Origin: Perkinsus chesapeaki ATCC PRA-425
Taxonomy: Eukaryota; Protista; Perkinsozoa
Direction of reading: 5' to 3'
NCBI GenBank assembly: GCA_013115145.1
Contig: JAAPAO010000128.1
Location: forward strand, 3,440 to 67,439
DNA length: 64,000 nucleotides
The notes beneath the pieces are model-generated. The model searched no databases. It had not been told where the DNA came from and saw only the letters and a list, made by a program, of their open reading frames with translations. Position numbers and translations under genes: made by a program. Each line of letters opens with the position of its first letter. Within the stretch, counting starts at the first letter, position 1. This document shows positions 51,562 to 64,000 of the stretch, one piece after another.

Positions 51562-52974
51562 ATGGAACTCACGTCAGATGATATCTGGGGCTCGCCCATC
51601 CGAGGAGTGGCTTTGCGTGAAATCACCGCAAGGTTGTCTGTGTTTCGGAACTCTGAAGCATCAGATGAATCATACCGATTGTCCAAAACGGTCGAGAAGT
51701 TAGATCTATTTTTAAGTCACTCATGGTCTGGTAGCCCTTTCTGGAAGCATATGACACTCGTTACCGTTCTGTATGTCAAGTTTGGTTATATTGCAATGCT
51801 CCTCACTGTTATACCATTATCAGTAGGTATTTACTTCTTACCCGTTTATAAAAGAGAGGCTGTTGTAGCCACGGAAGTACTCGGTGTGTTGGCCATGTTT
51901 CTCGGTATGTGGTTTGGTTATCTAGTCCCAAGCCGAACCAACAAGAAAATGGTGTTCCTTGATAAATGCTGTATACCTCAAGTTGACGAGAAGGCGAAGA
52001 GGGAAGGGTTGAAGAACATGGAAGCCTACCTTAGTCGATCTGATACGCTGCTTATCCTTTGGACGCCCGAGTACTTCTCGAGGCTTTGGTGTGTCTTTGA
52101 GTTGGCTAGCTATCTTCGTAGTCATGGAGCCGACTCGATTCTGTGCTTGTCGGCTTGGTTTATGCGGTTTTCTTACGTTGTCGTCTGGTGGGAGGTGTTC
52201 AGTCTTCTTGCTGCTGAAATCGCGAACGCCGCAATCCCAATCAAACAAGCACAGACGCTTTGGGGCGAATTCGTTGTGTGTTTAGTCGCTGAGGTCGCTA
52301 TATCCATCGCTATATGTTTAATTGTGATCCTCTTCTGTATTCCTGCCAAGATGGAGTTGAAGAAGCAGGTTCAACAGTTTTCAATGCGGACAGCATACTG
52401 CACGCTCGCTGAAGATACTACTATGCTGAGCTCTCGAATTTCCGAGTGGTATGGCTCGAATGAAAACTTTGATGAGTGTGTACGAAGTAGCTGGTCACGG
52501 GTAAACTCAGTAATGAAGATTCCAGAGCCTGCCTTATCGAGACCGGGAATTGCCTTCGTTACCTTCCCTTATGTAATGGCCTTGTGGCCTCGTTTGCTTA
52601 CTGCTTTGGCCTGGAATTATGGAAGCGAGGAAAATGGGTATTCATGGACTGTAATTATTCGGAGTACATTCATCATGTTTGTTCTACTAGCATGCCGCAC
52701 ACCTCTCTTCGTTGTGATGTCCTACCGCATAGGTAGCGCCGTATGGCTGAAGGGCAGTCTCGCTAAATGCATCAGTATCGCTATTATGGTGTTTTTTGCT
52801 CTTCTTTACGGTGGCGCTATGTTCGTTTCAGCGCAGGGAGTCTTAATCTTTTACGGACCCCAGACGCCAGTTCTATTCCCGCAAAGTCCCTGGGCGTGGC
52901 TATTCATCACACTACCGATATTGGCCGTTGCATTGGTGTGCTGGACCCACTTTCCCCGCAGCTTGCATCATTGA
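51562..52974 (+). CDS. Multipass membrane protein with split TIR-like domain (copy A)
   Basis: Intronless 470 aa. LDLFLSHSW - two hydrophobic helices - VFLDKCCIPQ - YLSRSDTLLILWTPEYFSRLWCVFELASYL, then ~5-6 further hydrophobic helices. Confidence 0.8.
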   Translation: MELTSDDIWGSPIRGVALREITARLSVFRNSEASDESYRLSKTVEKLDLFLSHSWSGSPFWKHMTLVTVLYVKFGYIAMLLTVIPLSVGIYFLPVYKREAVVATEVLGVLAMFLGMWFGYLVPSRTNKKMVFLDKCCIPQVDEKAKREGLKNMEAYLSRSDTLLILWTPEYFSRLWCVFELASYLRSHGADSILCLSAWFMRFSYVVVWWEVFSLLAAEIANAAIPIKQAQTLWGEFVVCLVAEVAISIAICLIVILFCIPAKMELKKQVQQFSMRTAYCTLAEDTTMLSSRISEWYGSNENFDECVRSSWSRVNSVMKIPEPALSRPGIAFVTFPYVMALWPRLLTALAWNYGSEENGYSWTVIIRSTFIMFVLLACRTPLFVVMSYRIGSAVWLKGSLAKCISIAIMVFFALLYGGAMFVSAQGVLIFYGPQTPVLFPQSPWAWLFITLPILAVALVCWTHFPRSLHH

Positions 52975-53504
52975 TAAGTCATTATTTCATCCTTATTTGT
53001 CGAGGTTTAAAATTATAGGCAGGTCTTTTGTAAGATACGTGTATTGAGTTTAGTTTTCTCCGTTTTTGGGCATTGGTAAAGTGACATTAGTTATTTGAAA
53101 TATATAATATATTTCGAAATCGGTGTTCCTTGTTGGCAAGAAGCTTTTGATTGTATGGCAAGTAAGGCCTTGAAATTTCTGTTGGCATCTAAATAAGTCA
53201 GAATGTGACCAGTATGATATCGAAGGAGTAAGAACAGACCTTTCCTGAGGGTGAGGTGCTAGCCCTCCGAACCATGAGACGAGAATGGTGGGAGTTTAAG
53301 TCCAAGAACCGGGATCGAGATCTGAAGTTTTAGCTGTTCTGTATTGCAACTTAATGGTTGAACCACCTTCTTCAGATCAAATACTGTGCAGGTGATTAAG
53401 TTCTTCTCGTTCTGATCACTCTTTTGGTTCCAGAGTGTCAAAACCTCATACTTGTTACCTCTGCGGTCATGCGTCCACCACCTGTCGCCCAGCAGGCTGC
53501 TGGG

Positions 53505-53808
53505 CGTTTGCCGACGCAGCTGCTGGCAGCAGCTGTGTCGGCAAACGTCATAAGAGTCTCTTATTGAGAGATGACATCAAGCACATCTCTGAGATGTGAT
53601 AAGTATTTCCGAAATACTATGTCGCCTGAATCCTCCGAACTTCGGAGTCTTCGGAGTCCGAAGACTGGGGAGTTCCCAGTGGGGACTGTGACACAGTCGC
53701 TGTGTCCGACATTCAATATCGGGCTTCACAAGGGTACAGTAGCTCGCATGGAGAAGTACATACCGAGAGGCTTCGTGCCTTTTTCCTGGAAGAACCCTCC
53801 CGGAGGGT
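53505..53808. repeat. Cluster of 1-nt-spacer palindromes
   Basis: Arms 21 bp with 1 mismatch (53505-53547), 8 bp (53582-53598), 7 bp (53633-53647), 10 bp (53646-53666), 7 bp (53688-53702), 7 bp (53794-53808). Confidence 0.85.
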
Positions 53809-53974
53809 CCCTCCCCGTCTAATACGGGGGGGGCGGAGGAGGTCAGCCTAAAACGGCTTTGGATCCCGTCACCTTGCCATCAGCCAGCGAGATTGGCAAG
53901 GAGTTTAGCACGCTCAATTTTCTAAACCAGCACGATACAGCCAGATACTTGAGCGACTTGCTGAGGATCAGGGA

Positions 53975-54343
53975 GTGCTAGACTTGCTCAAGCTCACCCA
54001 GGACGCCGCCTGTGCAGCTAAGCCTCCTGCTGCGGTTCCTATGCCCCGCGTGAAGTCCTATGTATCCACCTTGGACCTTCCCCAGCGTAAGCTCGAGAAG
54101 CTTGCTGGTAGTATCGATAGAGACTCATGGAGCTCTGTGCTCCCGCAGAGGTCACCCATACGGTCCTCCTTGTCGGACTGTGAGCTGAACTTTGTCCTAC
54201 GGAACCCAAGGATATGTTCAGCTCTGTTTGCAAGCACTTCGAACTTCAATCTACCTCCAGCAGCTCCAGCAGCACCAATAGCACAGAAGGGTCACAGAGA
54301 CTCGTGTTCGGGATGGACTTCGGTGGTGGCACTAATAAGGTAG
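53975..54343 (+). CDS. Hypothetical ORF or gene fragment
   Basis: 122-codon open frame extending upstream as PARYSQILERLAEDQGV; no ATG start and no recognised domain. Confidence 0.3.
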   Translation: MLDLLKLTQDAACAAKPPAAVPMPRVKSYVSTLDLPQRKLEKLAGSIDRDSWSSVLPQRSPIRSSLSDCELNFVLRNPRICSALFASTSNFNLPPAAPAAPIAQKGHRDSCSGWTSVVALIR

Positions 54344-55304
54344 CCGTACGTCCTGTGGGACTATCCGATGGACATGGCTGTTTGGTTGTGCTGGACAGCA
54401 GGAAGGACTCGAGGCTCACCACAAAACAGATCGTTCATGAGTTGAAACGGCTCGAGCAGTGGTTCCACTTGTTTCAATTCTGATAACGAACAACAGTTTT
54501 CGGCCGGGACATCATCTAACGCCTGATGGTTATGCGCCGCATGATATTTCTTCCCGACGACACCGCATAATATGCTAAGGTCTGGACCAGACCATCTGGG
54601 GCATGCAGGAATCAACTGGAAGATCTTCGGTCAGATAAGCTGCATCTATCTCCGGGAGATGATCTCCCACCAACCCTATTGCAGGAAGCACTCCCACCAA
54701 GACTGACGTCTTGTGCTACTCCGGGTCCCGGAGTCCGGGAATGACTGCAAAAGGATCCTAGAGTCTAGGACCTAGACAAATCGGATACTACTGCGCCCGC
54801 TCTCGAAGGCTTGGAGAAGTGGAAAGATTCATGTAAGGTCCCGGTAGCTACGTGTTTGCTCATGAAAGGGCTGATGGCTGCGCATTCTGCGGAGTCCCGT
54901 TAATGATTTCAACAATGCGTACGTTTCTGCAGGATACAATTCGAGTCTGATTATTCATTAAATGAATTTCATTTGCTGTTGGTCCATACAGTCGAGCTCT
55001 ATATGGCAGCAGTGATGGCTTGCGACTAGTGACTGAGGAGTTGTCAGAGCAAGTACACTCGGCGGTGAACACAGTCATTAGACGATCACAGATGGGATCC
55101 AATTTGCTCGGTCCAATGGCCATGTGGAACTGGCAGTATTCGCCTGATGAAGCCTCGGAATCCGTCGATTACCTTATCCCCGGGAGCCCTAGTTACAGGC
55201 CGGAGCGGAACCGGAAAGGGGATAGCATTATCTTCCCAAGTTAATCTCAGTTCTACCTCTCAGCCTTCCACTCGGTTTCAGTCAGGTGGTTCGGAGTATG
55301 TTGA

Positions 55305-55435
55305 TGGAAGGGAGTCCAACAGTAAATAATTCTTTCGAGTCGAAAGAATTATTTACTGTTGGACTCCCTTCCAATCACAATCACACACAATCACAGTAAG
55401 TTAGTCGAAAGTTTCGACTAACTTACTGTGATTGT
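55305..55435. repeat. Two adjacent perfect long inverted repeats, each with a single G spacer
   Basis: 34-bp arms at 55305-55338/55340-55373 and 24-bp arms at 55387-55410/55412-55435, checked base by base. Confidence 0.97.
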
Positions 55436-55776
55436 TGCACCGATAAAGATTCGTTCCGAACGCGAATATTCTGAGGAAAATAGCTAAAACAAGATTAACA
55501 GCTAAAATTTTAGATTAGTAGTGTGGACCACTGATTGCTCACGACTCCCGCGTAGGCAAACCCTGGCAGTTGTTAAGGATGCGACACACATTCTGTCACA
55601 CTGCGTGAACAGTCACAGCGTGACTGTGCCCCACCGACAGAAGTTCTGTCGCTGCGAAATGCTCGAAGCCCCTGGGATTTAAGTGGTAGCCTTCATCATT
55701 GCGAGGTACATGTCTTTTTGTTGTGGGCTTTCGCTGCTCTATTCTTCAGTCCTCTTGGCAGTATATTCCTTTTTAT

Positions 55777-57267
55777 ATGGCTGATCCTAATATCGGCGTT
55801 GAAGGACCCCCAGAGTTACGAATGCGGAGCTCGAGCGACGTGTCGGACCTCGCCCAGCTGCTACGAGGAATACCTGCTAGTGTTATCGCAGCTAACTGGT
55901 CTCTTTTCCGTGATCCTGGAGCTGATCGCTCTACATATGATCTGTCCCGACCTGTTAATATCTTGGACGTTTTTATTAGCCACTCATGGTCAGGCAGTCC
56001 ACTGTGGAAGCAGATATCATTTCTAACTACCCTTTACCTCCGGGAGGGCTATATTGCTATGTTTATCGTTGTTATTCCTTTATCTATTGGAGTCTATGTA
56101 TTACCATCTCACCAGGAGCTCGCGTCTGTCCTGGTTGAACTTGTTGGTGTCATTGCTATGTGTCTTGGTGTGGTGTATGGGTATCGGTTGGTCAAGAAGA
56201 AGTCGGAAGATATGGTTTTCCTGGATAAATGTTGTATACCACAAGATGATCCTGCCGCCAAGGAGCGGGGTATATGCAGTATAAGCGTTTTTCTACACCA
56301 TTCGAGCAGGCTTATGATACTGTGGAGCCCAGACTACTTCTCACGGCTCTGGTGCGTATTCGAATTGGCATCCTTTCTTCGAGCACATAGCCCCGATGCT
56401 ATTGTACTAGTATCCACATTGCAAAGCCGTTTTTGTATATCCGTCACTATCTGCGAAATTGCTGTGCTCGTGACGGTCATCCTAAGCGATCTGTTGTTCA
56501 AAATCCATCCATTAGCATTCTATGCACCACTCGTGGTCCTCATTGTACTAGAAGTCATAGTGACTTTTGTCATATGCGTTGAGGTTATTTCTGGATTCGT
56601 GCCGGCGAAGTCTAAGATCAACGAACAAGTGGAATCCTTTCGAGTGAGTGAGGCCCAGTGCTCCCTCCCCGAGGATAATCGTGTCCTTCGTGAAACCATC
56701 GCTCAATGGTATGGATCTGAATCACAGTTTGAGGACAGTTTACGTGACAACTGGCCTCGCTTGGGTGCAACTCAAATTCCGGAATGGGCCCTGAGTCGGC
56801 GCAGCGTAGGGATCGTCATGTTCCCGTATATGATTATTTGGGCTCCGCGTATTGCGTGTCTCATATCTACGCCGACTCTGATGCCCAGAGAGCAGTGGTG
56901 GTTGTACGTTAGAGATGTCCTTATTGCGTGTGTCATGCTTGCTTGTCGAACACCGTTATTCGCTTTTGTTGCATGCAAACTAACAACCTCAGCCGGACGA
57001 CATGGAGTACCAAACTGGATCGTCATTGTCGTGGTGCTTGTATTTGGGGTTTTGTATGATGCTACTGAGATTGTTGGAGGAGGGGTAGCCCTGTTCGACT
57101 CGAGCCTCGCAACTCGGTTCAAGCTCCCTGAACCCTATGGCTGGGTGTTCGTCATTCCTGCTTGTGGTTGCCTACTTGCTATTTGGTGGACTTATCGTGG
57201 TCTCACATTTTGTTCAAGGCGCCGATCGACACCTCAAAAGATCGTCAGTACAGAAAACTCACTTTAA
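55777..57267 (+). CDS. Multipass membrane protein with split TIR-like domain (copy B, diverged paralog of A)
   Basis: Intronless; LDVFISHSW, VFLDKCCIPQ, LMILWSPDYFSRLWCVFELASFL, FRVSEAQCSLPED..IAQWYGSESQFE. First ATG at 55777. Confidence 0.8.
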   Translation: MADPNIGVEGPPELRMRSSSDVSDLAQLLRGIPASVIAANWSLFRDPGADRSTYDLSRPVNILDVFISHSWSGSPLWKQISFLTTLYLREGYIAMFIVVIPLSIGVYVLPSHQELASVLVELVGVIAMCLGVVYGYRLVKKKSEDMVFLDKCCIPQDDPAAKERGICSISVFLHHSSRLMILWSPDYFSRLWCVFELASFLRAHSPDAIVLVSTLQSRFCISVTICEIAVLVTVILSDLLFKIHPLAFYAPLVVLIVLEVIVTFVICVEVISGFVPAKSKINEQVESFRVSEAQCSLPEDNRVLRETIAQWYGSESQFEDSLRDNWPRLGATQIPEWALSRRSVGIVMFPYMIIWAPRIACLISTPTLMPREQWWLYVRDVLIACVMLACRTPLFAFVACKLTTSAGRHGVPNWIVIVVVLVFGVLYDATEIVGGGVALFDSSLATRFKLPEPYGWVFVIPACGCLLAIWWTYRGLTFCSRRRSTPQKIVSTENSL

Positions 57268-59784
57268 TTTCCTTTTCTGAACTTGTTTTTTCTAATCATG
57301 TACAGTAAGCTGTCGGATGATTTGACTGGCTTGACTTTGCTACCCATGCAGATTGACCGACATCTGTTAAGTATTTTCGTTTCATTCGTGCCTAGTTTAT
57401 GAAGCCGGTGAGGCTCATGTTGGAGTGCGAGAGGTTTGTTGATTGCTGTCCGTTGCATAAGCGTCAAAGGGTGAGTGACGCAGCCGATCAAGTCGGGCAA
57501 TCTATTGCATTTTCCTGCTGTACTTTACATTTCACGCCTTCGATTATGTCGTTTCGATACCTACTAACCGTCATAATACTACAGCAAGGCTGTAATTCGA
57601 TTCCTTCGGAGATTATCTTAGTTCTCATAGTGTAAATTCGGGACTAACCCTCAAACAAAGATCAGAAATCCACGACGATCTTTGGCAAGTGCATGGATCG
57701 ACAAGTTTTGCGAGAATCTGAGCCGAGGATTGGAGAGTCTTATTACATACTCGGGTACTGAGGAGTGTACACCCTTTCCACACAAGACAACATCGGTTCT
57801 CAGACCGCAATGCTTTCCGAAGTATATAGTAGGCCAAGTCTCCAGGGCAAGTCGAAACGAAATGCAATGATGGAGCAATCAAACAAATAGATGTGTTGAT
57901 AGAATGTTGTGTATATAATACTCATTGATGGTCTCGAGTCCTTGGCAAACATCTTTTCATGAACTGCGATCGTGTTCGGTAATTATCCTACAACTGTTGT
58001 GTGTAACACACTTCTCCCGCCACAGCTAATCTACATCCGACTCAATCTAAGTTCATAATGATTCATTATTAATAAACAATCGGAGATGATGGCGTCATCG
58101 AAGCAACCTTGGTATGGCAACTCTTTCAGAGGTACCAAAACTTGAAAATCACAAGTTGCGGAATTGAAGTTGCAACCTCCATCCTAGCTCGGATTCGTTA
58201 TTGCAGTAATGACAAGGCAACTAGATTTGACAATTATCTCGAACTATAGACGAACCTAAAACATGGGGTCGTCTGATGACATCCTTATATCCCATGTTCT
58301 GTTACAGAACTCCTGTAGCCAGGCAACAGTAGACTTGCACTCAAAATATATGTGTGGCACGGAACATACGATTCCACGACAGTGCGAATTGCAATCGGAT
58401 TAACGGAATGAAAACTTGGATCCGGTGGAATGACAAACCAGTTGCTAGTAATTGAGATCCAACAGCACCAGTCGCTTGACCATAAACTTTTAATGGCATG
58501 AAGCCTCATCTGTATTCCAGCCCGACCGAGTACAGGAGAGACTCGGTCAAGTTTGGGTTTTTTTATTGTAGTTCTACCGTCATGAGGTGCTACCGAGCTT
58601 AAGAGCAATAATAAAACTATTCACTCATTCCTGTGGCTGTTGTCGCCTACAAACTGTAGACCATAATTTGTGTGTAAGATGGCAACGCTAGGAACCAAGT
58701 TGGTTCAACCAACGCCAACACTCATCTAGCAGCTTTGCGAATTGCACTAGAATTTCGCGTGGAATTAGATGCCTGACGGCTTTTGATTGAACTAGCTGAT
58801 TCCATAAAATCTCACTTGACGAAGCGGGTATCTATAAAATATAAGATACGACAGTGTCATGATGACATGACGGACTACTTCAATTCGTCATGTACCTATA
58901 TCATACCTATTGGAAGACTCCACTAAGCCCGAGCGCCGACCGAGTTGAGTATTGGTTGAGATTCACCTGCAAAGACGCGGTTTTCGTTCGATCCGCAAGG
59001 ATCGAGAAAACCGCCCCAGTACATTTAACCTCATTGTTACCTTTGTGGTAACACCAGGCTATCCAAAACAACGCAGTTTTCATCGTTCGTTGAGTTGAGC
59101 CTTTGTCACAGTCAGTTCGGTCGAAAATTGATGGAGTTTTTGTGAGGATGTCATAGTCAGTCTGGGCTCAGACTGACCGACTAAATAACGAGCTTATCAC
59201 AGCAGTAAGATTATGAAACTTCTAGTGATGCCGGTATTATAATAGTTGGTTGATGAGGGATATCCCAAATCATTTTCCGTTCACCTCTTCGCAGTTGCAG
59301 CCTGAAGCATACAGCAATTGGCTCTATACCTCGTGAAGCGAACTTACTCAGTTCCCATAGCTTACGCAAACCGCCATAGCTATCGTTGACTGAGTATCAC
59401 GTTTGACATTGTGAGAAAATCATCTGGTCGTGTTCCAAATGGGAGGGTGGCTTCAATCTCGTCTACTATGAATCATAGTCTATGATAGTTTATCGAGAAA
59501 CGTTCCCAGTGATGTGTTAACAACTGAGTAGCAAGTGCGTTGGACCCGCAGCATGAGTAATTGCTTCGTTCGAGCCCACTAGTTGCACGTCTGTGAGGGT
59601 CTTGCTTACTGGTATCAATTACGTCCCTAACAGGTTTTTATCCTATACAACAATCAAAAATCGGTCGATCTTCTAGCATTTCTAGCTTAGCAGGTCCATC
59701 TGGGAGCACTGGCGCTGAAAAAAAGGTTATACAACTCACGTCGCTCCAGACAAGAACTGATCCATCATCGCTAAGTGGAGCACT

Positions 59785-60087
59785 CTACAGTCTCTGCCCG
59801 TTCATACTCCGAGCAATACGAAGGTGCGAAAGAAGGCTTCTCTTCGCATATGCTTCGCCTTTCCCTCGCGCAATAAACGAGTGAATTACAGAACCTTCAA
59901 TCTTAACGGCATCAGTTTTCAGAAACACCGAGTCAGGTAGACACGGGACTCGTGACAGAACTCCTGTCACCGGAGATGCTTGACTGACCGCGCGCTCTGT
60001 CCCACTCTGAGATGTATCGTTGCCATTATTTGTGTGGCATAACCCTACGGAAGACTCCTCCTCTGGGGGTTGGATCGGGTTCGGCAT
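59785..60087 (-). CDS. Small hypothetical ORF divergent from copy C
   Basis: ATG-initiated 100-aa ORF, no recognised domain. Confidence 0.25.
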   Translation of the reverse strand: MPNPIQPPEEESSVGLCHTNNGNDTSQSGTERAVSQASPVTGVLSRVPCLPDSVFLKTDAVKIEGSVIHSFIARGKGEAYAKRSLLSHLRIARSMNGQRL

Positions 60088-60292
60088 CTTTAAGGCTCTA
60101 GCAGTATGGTCACTAGATTATTTGATACCTGCTTGCGTTTGAAGCCGGCAGGCTACAAACATTCCGCGGAGCCCCAGCAGTGGCATCATGAGAAGTGCGA
60201 CGTCACCCCGGCTGCCGGAGCCCGGCATCTCGCTTCGATCTGAGCCGAGATCCGTTTTATCGTTCTCAGTTTGAAGTGCGAGCTTTCCTCTC

Positions 60293-61714
60293 ATGGACTT
60301 CATCACGTCGAGCGAGAGACCTGTGTTCGGATCTCATATTCGAGGTACAACTCTGGATAACATCACCTCAAGATGTTATTTATTCTACAATTCGGAGGCA
60401 TCCGAGAAAACTTACGAGCTGTCGAGACAAGTCGAGAAGTTAGATCTATTTTTAAGTCACTCATGGTCTGGTAGCCCTTTCTGGAAGCATATGACACTCG
60501 TTACCGTTCTATATGTCAAGTTTGGTTATATTGCAATGCTCCTCACTGTTATACCATTATCAGTAGGTATTTACTTCTTACCCGCTTACAAGAGAGAAGC
60601 TGTTGTAGCCACGGAAGTACTTGGTGTGTTTGCTATGTTTCTCGGTATGTGGTTTGGTTATCTAGTCCCAAGCCGAACCAACAAGAAAATGGTGTTCCTT
60701 GATAAATGCTGTATACCTCAAGTTGACGAGGAGGCGAAGAGGGAAGGGTTGAAGAACATGGAAGCCTACCTTAGTCGATCTGATACGCTGCTAATCCTCT
60801 GGACGCCCGAGTACTTCTCGAGGCTTTGGTGTGTCTTTGAGTTGGCTAGCTATCTTCGTAGTCATGGCCCCGACTCGATTCTTTGCTTGTCGGCTTGGTT
60901 CATGCGGTCTTATCATATGGTTGTTTGGTGGGAGGTCGCATGTGTTATCAGTTTGGAAACCGCAAATGCCGCGATTCCGAGGGACCCACAAATAAAACTG
61001 TGGATCGCGTTAGTTTGTTGGTCCGTGACCGAGGTCGCGTTATGCATCGCTATATGTTTAATTGTGATCCTCTTCTGTATTCCTGCCAAAATGGAGCTGA
61101 AGAAGCAGGTTCAACAGTTTTCAATGCGGACAGCATACTGCACGCTCGCTGAAGATACTACTATGCTGAGCTCTCGAATTTCCGAGTGGTATGGCTCGAA
61201 TGAAAGCTTTGATGAGTGTGTACGAAGTAGCTGGTCACGGGTAAACTCAGTAATGAAGATTCCAGAGCCTGCCTTATCGAGACCGGGAATTGCCTTCGTT
61301 ACCTTCCCTTATGTAATGGCCTTGTGGCCTCGTTTGCTTACTGCTTTGGCCTGGAATTATAGAAGCGAGGAAAATGGGTATTCATGGACTGTAATTATTC
61401 GGAGTACATTCATCATGTTTGTTCTACTAGCATGCCGCACACCTCTCTTCGTTGTGATGTCCTACCGCATAGGTAGCGCCGTATGGCTGAAGGGCAGTCT
61501 CGCTAAATGCATCAGTATCGCTATTATGGTGTTTTTTGCTCTTCTTTACGGTGGCGCTATGTTCGTTTCAGCGCAGGGAGTCTTAATCCTTTACGGACCC
61601 CAGACGCCAATTCTATTCGCGCAAAGTCCCTGGGCGTGGCTATTCATCGCATTACCAATATTGGCCGTTGCATTGGTGTGCTGGACCCACTTTCCCCGCG
61701 GCTTGCACCATTGA
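60293..61714 (+). CDS. Multipass membrane protein with split TIR-like domain (copy C, close paralog of A)
   Basis: Intronless 473 aa; nearly identical to A except the N-terminus and one internal segment. Confidence 0.8.
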   Translation: MDFITSSERPVFGSHIRGTTLDNITSRCYLFYNSEASEKTYELSRQVEKLDLFLSHSWSGSPFWKHMTLVTVLYVKFGYIAMLLTVIPLSVGIYFLPAYKREAVVATEVLGVFAMFLGMWFGYLVPSRTNKKMVFLDKCCIPQVDEEAKREGLKNMEAYLSRSDTLLILWTPEYFSRLWCVFELASYLRSHGPDSILCLSAWFMRSYHMVVWWEVACVISLETANAAIPRDPQIKLWIALVCWSVTEVALCIAICLIVILFCIPAKMELKKQVQQFSMRTAYCTLAEDTTMLSSRISEWYGSNESFDECVRSSWSRVNSVMKIPEPALSRPGIAFVTFPYVMALWPRLLTALAWNYRSEENGYSWTVIIRSTFIMFVLLACRTPLFVVMSYRIGSAVWLKGSLAKCISIAIMVFFALLYGGAMFVSAQGVLILYGPQTPILFAQSPWAWLFIALPILAVALVCWTHFPRGLHH

Positions 61715-62460
61715 TCTGTCTTCGCGGAACAATTTCATCGTTACTTGTCGCCGATAGTTTAAAGATTATTGTCTTTTGTAAGATACTGTATTGGGTTCAC
61801 CTTTCTCCGTTTCTGGCATTGGGAAATCGATATTAGTTACTTGGAATATGATTTCGTCCTTGGCAAGATGCTTGTCTTCGGAATCAGGGCGTTGCTGTTT
61901 TTGTGGCCTTCCGCATAAGTCAGAGTGCGACCAGCATGATCTCGAAGGAGTGAGAGAAGATCTTCCCTGAGAAGAGGAGTGGTGTTAACCCTTCGAAGTT
62001 CGAACCACAAGATAAGAATGCTGGGAGCTTTAGTCCAAGAACTGGGCTCGAGTTTCGCTGGAGATGCGGCGTCCCTGACGGCAGCCGTAGAGGTCGCTCG
62101 TACACCCAAGGCTTGAGTCTCAAGCCCACTTACAAAGCTGCTAGAGCTGCCACTAGATGCCTCATTGATAATTAAAGCTTCAATTTAGATAGCTAGGAAG
62201 AAGTCTGTTACTAGTGGAAGCTCCCTAAGTATGTTAGCACCACACGTTGTGATGTTCACATTGGCGAACCGCTGCCTCACGGCTCCCGCGTCGGCGTTCC
62301 CCGCCGGTTGTTGAGGATCTTCTTCCGTCGCTGCGAAGTTGACGCTGCTGGTCTCAGAGCCACTTGGCTTCGGGTATTAACCTTGCTAGCTGAACCTGTT
62401 TTCGTAACAGGTTTTCGCTGCTCTATTCTTCAGTCCTCTTGGCAGTATATTCCTTTTTAT

Positions 62461-63267
62461 ATGGCTGATCCTAATATCGGCGTTGAAGGACCCTCAGAGT
62501 TACGAATGCGGAGCTCGAGCGACGTGTCGGACCTCGCCCAGCTGCTACGAGGAATACCTGCTAGTGTTATCGCAGCTAACTGGTGTCTTTTCCGTGATCC
62601 TGGAGCTGATCGCTCTACATATGATCTGTCCCGACCTGTTAATATCTTGGACGTTTTTATTAGCCACTCATGGTCAGGCAGTCCATTGTGGAAGCAGATA
62701 TCATTTCTAACTACCCTTTACCTCCGGGAGGGCTATATTGCTATGTTTATCGTTGTTATTCCTTTATCTATTGGAGTCTATGTATTACCATCTCACCAGG
62801 AGCTCGCGTCTGTCTTGGTTGAACTTGTTGGTGTCATTGCTATGTGTCTTGGTGTGGTGTATGGGTATCGGTTGGTCAAGAAGAAGTCGGAAGATATGGT
62901 TTTCCTGAATAAATGTTGTATACCACAAGATGATCCTGCCGCCAAGGAGCGGGGTATATGCAGTATACATGTCCTTATTGCGTGTGTCATGCTTGCTTGT
63001 CGAACACCGTTATTCGCTTTTGTTGCATGCAAGCTAACAACCTCAGCCGGGCGACATGGAGTACCAAACTGGATCGTCATTGTCGTGGTGCTTGTATTTG
63101 GGGTTTTGTATGATGCTACTGAGATTGTTGGAGGAGGGGTAGCCCTGTTCGACTCGAGTCTCGCAACTCGGTTTAAGCTCCCTGAACCCTATGGCTGGGT
63201 GTTCGTCATTCCTGCTTGTGGTTGCCTACTTGCTATTTGGCGGACTTATTGTGGTCTTACATTTTGA
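62461..63267 (+). pseudogene. Copy D: near-identical duplicate of B with a 630-nt in-frame internal deletion and truncated C-terminus (pseudogene or truncated variant)
   Basis: B ..GCAGTATA|AGC..AGAG|ATGTCC.. becomes GCAGTATA-C-ATGTCC at 62961-62974. FLDKCC becomes FLNKCC. A 4-nt deletion near 63265 creates an early TGA. Confidence 0.8.
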
Positions 63268-64000
63268 GGCGCAGATCGACACCTCAAAAGATCGTCAGTA
63301 CAGAAAACTCACTTTAATTTCCTTTTCAGAACTTGTTCTTTCTAATCATGTACAGTAAGCTGTCGGATTATTCGACTGGCTTGACTTTGCTACCCATGCA
63401 GATTGACCGACATCTGTTAAGTATTTTCGTTGCATTCGTGCCTAGTTTATGAAGCCGGTGAGGCTCATGTTGGAGTGCGAGAGGTTTGTTGATTGCTGTC
63501 CGTTGCATAAGCGTCAAAGGGTGAGTGACGCAGCCGATCAAGTCGGGCAATCTGTTGCATTTTCCTGCTGTACTTTACATTTCACGCCTTCGGTTATGCC
63601 GTTTCGATACCTACTAACCGTCATAATACTACAGCAAGGCTGTAATTCGATTCCTTCGGAGATTATCTTAGTTCTCATAGTGTAAATTCGAGATCGGTCC
63701 GCCGAGGTGGAGGATCCCTCGATAACTAACCATCAACGAAAGATCAGATAGTACCGAATCCACGACGAACTTAAACAAGTGGATGGATCGACACCTTTTG
63801 CGAGAATGTGAGCTGAGCCTCAGCTGCTGAGGATTAGAGACTCTAAATTAAATACTCGGGTACTGCGAAGTGTGCACCCTTTCTACTCAAAACAGCATCG
63901 GTTCTCAGACCGCAACTCATAATATAGTACACCTTTTCAACGCCTATTTCGACAATAGTAACTTCTATTTCGACAGGCGAGCGAGATTTATGTTAAGATT

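Follow-up and report, generated by a model that had tools for sequence, protein, structure and literature searches.

The cluster at 51562-63267

The window analysed here, a stretch of 64,000 nucleotides from the clam parasite Perkinsus chesapeaki, occupies positions 3440-67439 of a contig labelled C309 in the 41.7-Mb genome assembly that was searched in this work; its closest protein matches are from this species. An earlier note, made from the sequence of this DNA, had described at positions 51562-63267 a cluster of multipass membrane proteins with a TIR-like domain. Open reading frame (ORF) analysis and a motif scan located the four long frames proposed, A to D, on the + strand of this region. 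A, B and C are intact genes. D is a degenerate copy of B and not a fourth intact member, so that part of the description was corrected. The starts of B and D, which had been placed at the TTG codons opening their frames, were moved to the ATG codons at 55777 and 62461.

51562..52974, + strand: gene A, 470 amino acids, intact, single exon, predicted split TIR domain and eight transmembrane (TM) helices (ORF, homologue alignment, AlphaFold2 model)
55777..57267, + strand: gene B, 496 amino acids, intact; frame open from 55699, first ATG at 55777 (ORF, motifs, tree)
60293..61714, + strand: gene C, 473 amino acids, intact (ORF, homologue alignment)
62461..63267, + strand: D, degenerate copy of B; ATG at 62461, frame 62308-63267 (DNA alignment to B, motif scan)

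The motifs quoted in the earlier note (FLSHSW or FISHSW, VFLDKCCIPQ, SRLWCVFE, C[ST]L.ED and WYGS) were all found in A, B and C. In gene A, the F-x-S-H-x-W motif is encoded at 51709-51726, VFLDKCCIPQ at 51952-51981, SRLWCVFE at 52078-52101 and C[ST]L.ED at 52399-52416. A, B and C all have the glutamate of WCVFE, as had been stated, and D is without the entire region. The genes were also correctly described as intronless and tandemly expanded: they are uninterrupted single ORFs, and the genome matches and the tree indicate that the expansion is lineage-specific. Gene A is alignable end to end with its homologues, and the ESM Atlas contains a sequence identical to its protein. B shares 36-39% identity with A; C shares 88%, but as a mosaic.

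TIR assignment and predicted architecture

The soluble segments had been read as TIR-like, a reading that both a sequence profile and the predicted fold uphold. A core profile of 78 residues, from betaB to betaD, was built from 21 paralogues of this genome and compared with all sequences in the Protein Data Bank (PDB). All 30 matches at E<=10 were TIR domains, including IL1RAPL2 (5.4e-5), RPPT-TIR ('ADP-ribosyl cyclase', 0.003), TLR2 (0.009) and RPP1 ('NADase', 0.01), with IL1RAPL1, Roq1, RUN1, Cat1, SNC1, L6 and RPS4 also among them. The alignment placed RlWCvfElA of the family on SSWCLDELA of the plant proteins, the glutamate of which is the catalytic residue of plant TIRs. Searches of the PDB with phmmer or with a profile at full length gave only marginal IL1RAPL2 matches (E ~0.1) because the TM regions dilute the signal; restricting the profile to the core resolved this.

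The Pfam matches of A, B and C to TIR_2 fall at profile positions 41-83, the correct ones (41-77 for the core of gene A). Of the 28 homologues in alignment A1, which come from Perkinsus spp., Symbiodiniaceae and environmental samples, 23 matched TIR_2 (best E 8.6e-5, mostly sub-threshold), 14 TIR and five HET, and no other Pfam family recurred. The best genomic paralogue reached 26.5 bits against TIR_2. A single homologue, P0013, exceeds the curated cut-off of PF01582 (22.6 vs 21.3 bits). These proteins have no Pfam family of their own, and the family lies inside the TIR/HET superfamily yet outside both curated families. One paralogue carries the automatic UniRef name 'TIR domain-containing protein'; the TIR signal of the family is therefore not wholly unseen before.

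The AlphaFold2 model of full-length A, computed with 28 sequences, had a predicted local distance difference test score (pLDDT) of 87.2 and a predicted template modelling score of 0.87; for residues 40-335, with 128 sequences, the pLDDT was 90.1. The modelled domain is a flavodoxin-like alpha/beta fold with a parallel sheet betaA-betaE. TIRs were the top Foldseek matches (probability 0.94-0.98), MyD88, RPS4 and ThsB were also among the fold matches, and in two independent models TIRs outranked all other alpha/beta folds. Foldseek with the full model returned nothing significant, unrelated polytopic membrane proteins dominating the list. Taken together, Pfam, the core profile and the predicted fold assign the family firmly to the TIR superfamily.

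The structural matches to TIR domains run from A residue 44-47 through to 318-334. Since they bridge two long helical excursions, the TIR fold is built from three chain segments and not two. In place of a contiguous domain of about 125-200 residues, the models show a TIR put together from residues 45-58, 118-197 and 272-332, between which TM hairpins of 59 and 74 residues are inserted. The earlier note had recognised that a TIR domain is split by the membrane, which stands, but it had counted one hairpin, and it had treated as a separate part a conserved soluble stretch that, according to the models and structural alignments, is the third TIR segment. The parts of protein A are as follows, with secondary structure from the models.

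51562..51735, + strand: residues 1-58, N-terminal cytosolic lead-in and betaA (strand 47-53) with the F-x-S-H-x-W motif
51736..51912, + strand: residues 59-117, predicted first TM hairpin, at the alphaA site; helices 59-92 and 97-117 (DSSP, both models)
51913..52152, + strand: residues 118-197, TIR core betaB-betaD, with the Glu180 codon at 52099-52101 (TIR_2 profile, core profile); betaB 130-132 followed by the BB loop, alphaB 143-158, betaC 160-167, alphaC 175-187, betaD 193-197
52153..52374, + strand: residues 198-271, predicted second TM hairpin, at the alphaD site (models); helices 198-224 and 234-271 (DSSP)
52375..52539, + strand: residues 272-326, third cytosolic segment completing the TIR, with F273, C280, D285, W296 and F303 (TIR structural alignments); betaE bridge at about 279, alphaE 283-297, extra helix 300-317
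52540..52971, + strand: residues 327-470, four further predicted TM helices, 327-351, 362-394, 399-423 and 443-463

In the first hairpin hydropathy peaks at A residues 77-95 and 100-118. The first helix of each hairpin starts directly after a strand; helix 59-92, at 34 residues, exceeds the span of a bilayer, and helix 198-224 has 27.

In the full model an even number of TM helices separates the cytosolic segments, and because each excursion is a hairpin the three TIR segments come to lie on one face of the membrane. The distribution of positive charge was examined in 149 aligned homologues. Lysine and arginine together have a density of 0.135-0.18 in the predicted inside loops versus 0.06-0.076 in the four outside loops, the median lengths of which are 6-14 amino acids; the loop between the helices of the first hairpin is short and poor in these residues family-wide. 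This bias supports the predicted topology, in which both termini are inside, eight helices span the membrane and the TIR is cytosolic. The earlier note would have been overturned by segments on opposite faces or by a lack of TIR fold matches; the segments are instead all cytosolic in the model, and the fold is matched. Its expression 'receptor-like' fared less well. With outside loops of only 6-14 amino acids there is no ectodomain, a receptor with an outer ligand-binding part is unlikely, and the term can mean only sensing within or at the membrane.

Conservation was computed over the same 149 homologues, and the most conserved positions all fall inside the three TIR segments. F50, S52, H53, W55, K62, D134, C137, Q140, R174, W176, E180 and F303 are 99% conserved, D285 100%, C177 97% and C280 95%. 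Mean column conservation was 0.62 in the betaA motif and 0.53 in the TIR core; it was 0.21-0.34 in the TM parts, lowest in TM3-4 (0.22) and TM5-8 (0.21). E180, with W176 at -4 and C177 at -3, lies in alphaC as expected of a W-x-x-x-E or WCxxE glutamate. It is invariant in 128 homologues, and its equivalent occurs in A, B, C and every intact paralogue and is absent from D. The computation thus bears out the conservation of a catalytic-type glutamate and reveals a pocket-like group of invariant residues, among them the glutamate that aligns with the one of the plant NADases.

Family, duplication and probable gene conversion

At least 41 matches were found in this genome, often in tandem (four each on contigs C3300, C1631 and C309, three on C2117, and others). 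The genome-wide count that the earlier note had proposed gave about 25 more open frames that contain the whole motif trio, 71-85 amino acids separating the first two motifs. The trio also occurs in thousands of proteins elsewhere, a recurrence far beyond chance. A six-frame TIR_2 scan of the genome returned 12 weak matches, all below the cut-off and all 12 belonging to the split-TIR family. That scan found no canonical TIR in the genome, and the family is the only TIR-like set detected there.

When 1.84 billion cluster representatives (clusters at 50% identity) were searched in full with HMMER, 6,463 matched at E<=1e-3, of which 1,826 also at E<=1e-30; among the matches listed, nearly the whole profile was covered. 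Those that are named come from Perkinsus, Symbiodinium, Durusdinium and Gymnodinium, some of them derived from transcriptomes. The nearest ESM Atlas clusters are labelled Haptophyta from very few members of known taxon, so that haptophyte membership is a lead only. In the tree the Perkinsus and dinoflagellate members are separate, the former making up a clade of their own. B (L006) and P. olseni P0007 are one-to-one orthologues (support 100/100), and A and C fall within a five-member expansion specific to P. chesapeaki, sister to a P. olseni-specific pair. Literature searches turned up no paper on a TIR interrupted by TM helices, nor any that treats the family in dinoflagellates or perkinsids; absence from the library searched is no proof. 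The text and supplements of a 2026 eukaryote-wide TIR atlas, in the parts accessible to us, make no mention of Perkinsus or Symbiodiniaceae.

Most dinoflagellate members have a Cys/His-rich insert of about 14 residues between the conserved Cys and Asp of the third segment (A residues 280-285), with the consensus C-F-C-C-x3-H-x2-P-x-T-G-x4-C-D-R. Perkinsus members are without it. From its sequence the insert is possibly a zinc knuckle. The Pfam scan detected no sensor domains in eight long homologues with N-terminal extensions. The environmental proteins P0028 and P0030 (889-890 amino acids) have a precomputed beta-lactamase-like assignment, PF00144, which on rescanning P0028 fell at N-terminal residues 25-117, and P0029 has an ABC_membrane fusion. 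These fusions may be artefacts of the gene models.

The cluster itself is a duplicated A-B unit (A-B / C-D) that arose by tandem duplication. D and B share about 98% nucleotide identity in pairwise DNA alignment. D lacks, in frame, 630 bp that correspond to B 56283-56912, a loss that removes the WCxxE core and helix, the second hairpin, the third segment and TM5. It also has VFLNK for VFLDK, the invariant Asp being replaced by Asn, and a 4-bp deletion near the 3' end. Because of these three changes D is regarded as a decaying copy; in public data it appears as a 344-amino-acid hypothetical protein (P0010). The 3' flanks of B and D (57667-57810 and 63757-63915) show that the duplicated unit reaches at least 650 bp past the stop codons with 85-98% identity, and the duplication from B to D therefore takes in the 3' flank.

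The mosaic nature of the A and C pair was evident from synonymous divergence (dS), which by region was 0.94 in the N-terminus, 0.16 in TM1-2, 0.08 in the TIR core, 0.74 in TM3-4, 0 in the third segment and 0.03 in TM5-8. Amino acid identity was 65% in the second hairpin (TM3-4) and 97% in the core. TM1-2 and the TIR core are nearly identical even across contigs (dS 0.04-0.28; paralogous loci including L003 and L005). These patterns suggest that gene conversion homogenises the putative catalytic module, the N-terminus and the second hairpin staying diverse. The ratio of nonsynonymous to synonymous divergence (omega) was below 1 in every region. Positive selection in the variable regions was considered and is unsupported: dS is high where the proteins vary and omega there is 0.2-0.6, which points to mosaic gene conversion instead.

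Two perfect palindromes, at 55305-55373 and 55387-55435, lie upstream of B, about 340-470 bp before its ATG, with arms of 34 nt and 24 nt, respectively, and a spacer of 1 nt each. Weaker palindromes are located at 53505-53547 and 53637-53675. A palindrome search of the spacer between B and C found none.

Proposed activity, alternatives and known systems

We consider the family to consist, with reasonable probability, of membrane-integral, Glu-dependent TIR-type enzymes that cleave NAD(P)+, the activity or oligomerisation of which is governed by their own TM bundle. Segment 1 would supply betaA, segment 2 betaB, the BB loop, alphaB, betaC, alphaC and betaD, and segment 3 betaE and alphaE, the alphaA and alphaD sites being taken by long helices that enter the membrane and come back as TM hairpins. 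The split TIR would act as a Glu-dependent N-glycosidase on NAD(P)+, as a hydrolase, an ADP-ribosyl cyclase or both. Control of its activity or self-association would lie with the condition of the membrane bundle (packing, lipid, voltage, mechanics or partner proteins) and not with an outside ligand domain; this control is proposed because two TIR helices appear continuous with membrane helices. Tandem duplication of the A-B unit would have been followed by homogenisation of the catalytic module by gene conversion and by decay of D. Both NAD+ cleavage and a sensing or immune role, as suggested in the earlier note, are inferences.

Some observations weigh against this interpretation. Against the TIR_2 cut-off of 28 bits, A, B and C themselves reach only 15.8-16.5 (E 0.012-0.021). 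Many Glu-bearing TIR domains are scaffolds or carry out other chemistries. The betaB/BB motif FLDKxCIxQ is closer to a block of HET than to any proven NADase. Lastly, the continuation of the equivalents of alphaA and alphaD into the membrane is deduced from helix lengths and alignment ranges in the models.

The motif just mentioned bears on an alternative that is unlikely but has to be weighed, namely that the family is a HET-like cell-death or incompatibility module, its eight-helix bundle being a membrane-damaging or ion-conducting effector, or a TIR-superfamily enzyme with another substrate (of the nucleic acid or 2',3'-cyclic nucleotide monophosphate synthetase type, a nucleotide N-glycosidase, or an enzyme of base exchange). 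HET, a remote homologue of TIR, carries out cell death in fungi by an unexplained mechanism (PMC10890737; homology also PMC4986451), and five of the 28 homologues match it at the VFLDxxCIxQ block (best E 0.0038). The high conservation of the WC-pair cysteine, the presence of nucleoside 2-deoxyribosyltransferases and DNPH1 among the fold matches, and a lineage-specific expansion like that of self/non-self gene families would also fit. However, the HET matches are fewer and weaker than those to TIR, lie below the cut-off and cover only HET profile positions 33-85 and not all three conserved blocks. A six-frame scan of the genome with HET gave no match, although control genomes gave none either. 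Furthermore, no channel or pore was matched with confidence by the TM bundle, and recognition domains were found neither fused to the proteins nor in their neighbourhood.

Next, and improbable in our estimate, comes a non-enzymatic scaffold in which the split TIR would serve homotypic or heterotypic TIR-TIR assembly, as in TLR/MyD88, on a membrane signalling platform that cleaves no NAD+. The best sequence matches do include the non-catalytic animal TIRs IL1RAPL1/2, TLR1/2/6/10 and SIGIRR, and the BB-loop region, important in adaptor contacts, is highly conserved. But about a dozen polar residues (S52, H53, K62, D134, C137, Q140, R174, E180 and D285 among them) show hardly any variation in thousands of very divergent proteins, the surfaces of which do vary; this is typical of an active site more than of an interface. 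The genome also offers no other TIR_2-type partner, all 12 weak matches being members of the family. An enzyme is favoured over a pure scaffold because the invariant polar residues surround the glutamate of the W-C-x-x-E helix. That the proteins are no TIRs at all, being transporter-like membrane proteins with a generic flavodoxin/Rossmann-like cytosolic domain and convergent motifs, is very improbable given the exclusively TIR matches of the sequence-only core profile, the register on the plant WCxxE helix, the rank of TIRs in both models and the one member above a Pfam curated TIR cut-off.

Within the reading of a membrane-integral NAD(P)+-cleaving enzyme, a more specific and doubtful proposal can be made. 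For dinoflagellates, pharmacological work has reported Ca2+ release dependent on cyclic ADP-ribose (cADPR), including cortical mechanosensitivity (reviewed in PMC9959387). The split-TIR family might be the ADP-ribosyl cyclase still missing from the picture of dinozoan cADPR-Ca2+ signalling. Through mechanical coupling of alphaA and alphaD to the TM bundle, the state of the membrane (stretch, voltage, lipid) would be converted directly into an NAD-derived messenger. A CD38-type cyclase was not found in this genome, a weak negative as control genomes gave no match either.

TIR domains have so far been studied as compact, contiguous, soluble modules. What is new here is the prediction that the same fold is threaded twice through the membrane; if true, a TIR under the control of the membrane portion of the same chain, and not of an attached sensor domain, would represent a new mode of regulation. 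The family is very large, with thousands of divergent members in dinoflagellates, which include coral symbionts and bloom formers, and dozens in the shellfish parasite Perkinsus. In alveolates it offers a concrete candidate for signalling by NAD derivatives or for regulated cell death and, as a natural 'split-domain' design, should interest structural biologists. The window contributes the four-gene cluster with its decayed D, the pattern of mosaic conversion, the family-wide test of topology and the finding that the core profile matches TIR domains exclusively.

Comparison with known systems shows partial likenesses. The TIRs of plant TIR-nucleotide-binding-leucine-rich repeat proteins (RPP1, RUN1, RPS4, Roq1, RPPT-TIR) share with the family the alphaC motif S-x-W-C-x-x-E-L (SRLWCVFELA in the family), with the glutamates aligned, and a betaA D-x-F-L-S motif. 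In contrast, they are contiguous, soluble and fused to NB-ARC-LRR, whereas the chain of the split TIR exits twice as TM hairpins and has no such part; its betaB/BB motif FLDKxCIxQ is not plant-like. Of SARM1 and TIR-1, SARM1, unlike the family, is regulated by ARM/SAM domains and is a soluble octamer, and it gave no sequence-level match. The animal proteins IL-1RAPL1/2 and TLR1/2/6/10 are the best sequence matches (E 5.4e-5 to 0.4) and, as predicted for the family, are membrane proteins with a cytosolic TIR. They differ in being single-pass, with a large ectodomain and a contiguous, mostly scaffold TIR, while the family has eight predicted TM helices, no ectodomain and a split domain.

The WIDxLCIxQ-type block of HET (PF06985) matches VFLDKxCIxQ of the family, and both form large, lineage-specifically expanded gene families, but HET proteins are soluble, fungal and without TM hairpins. 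A TIR NADase located at the membrane, as proposed for the family, is known from bacterial TM-tethered TIR effectors and from Dictyostelium TirC, the toxicity of which is restrained by its TM helix (PMC13142454). In these proteins a single terminal TM helix lies outside an intact TIR, whereas in the family described here the TM helices are predicted to be inserted within the domain itself.

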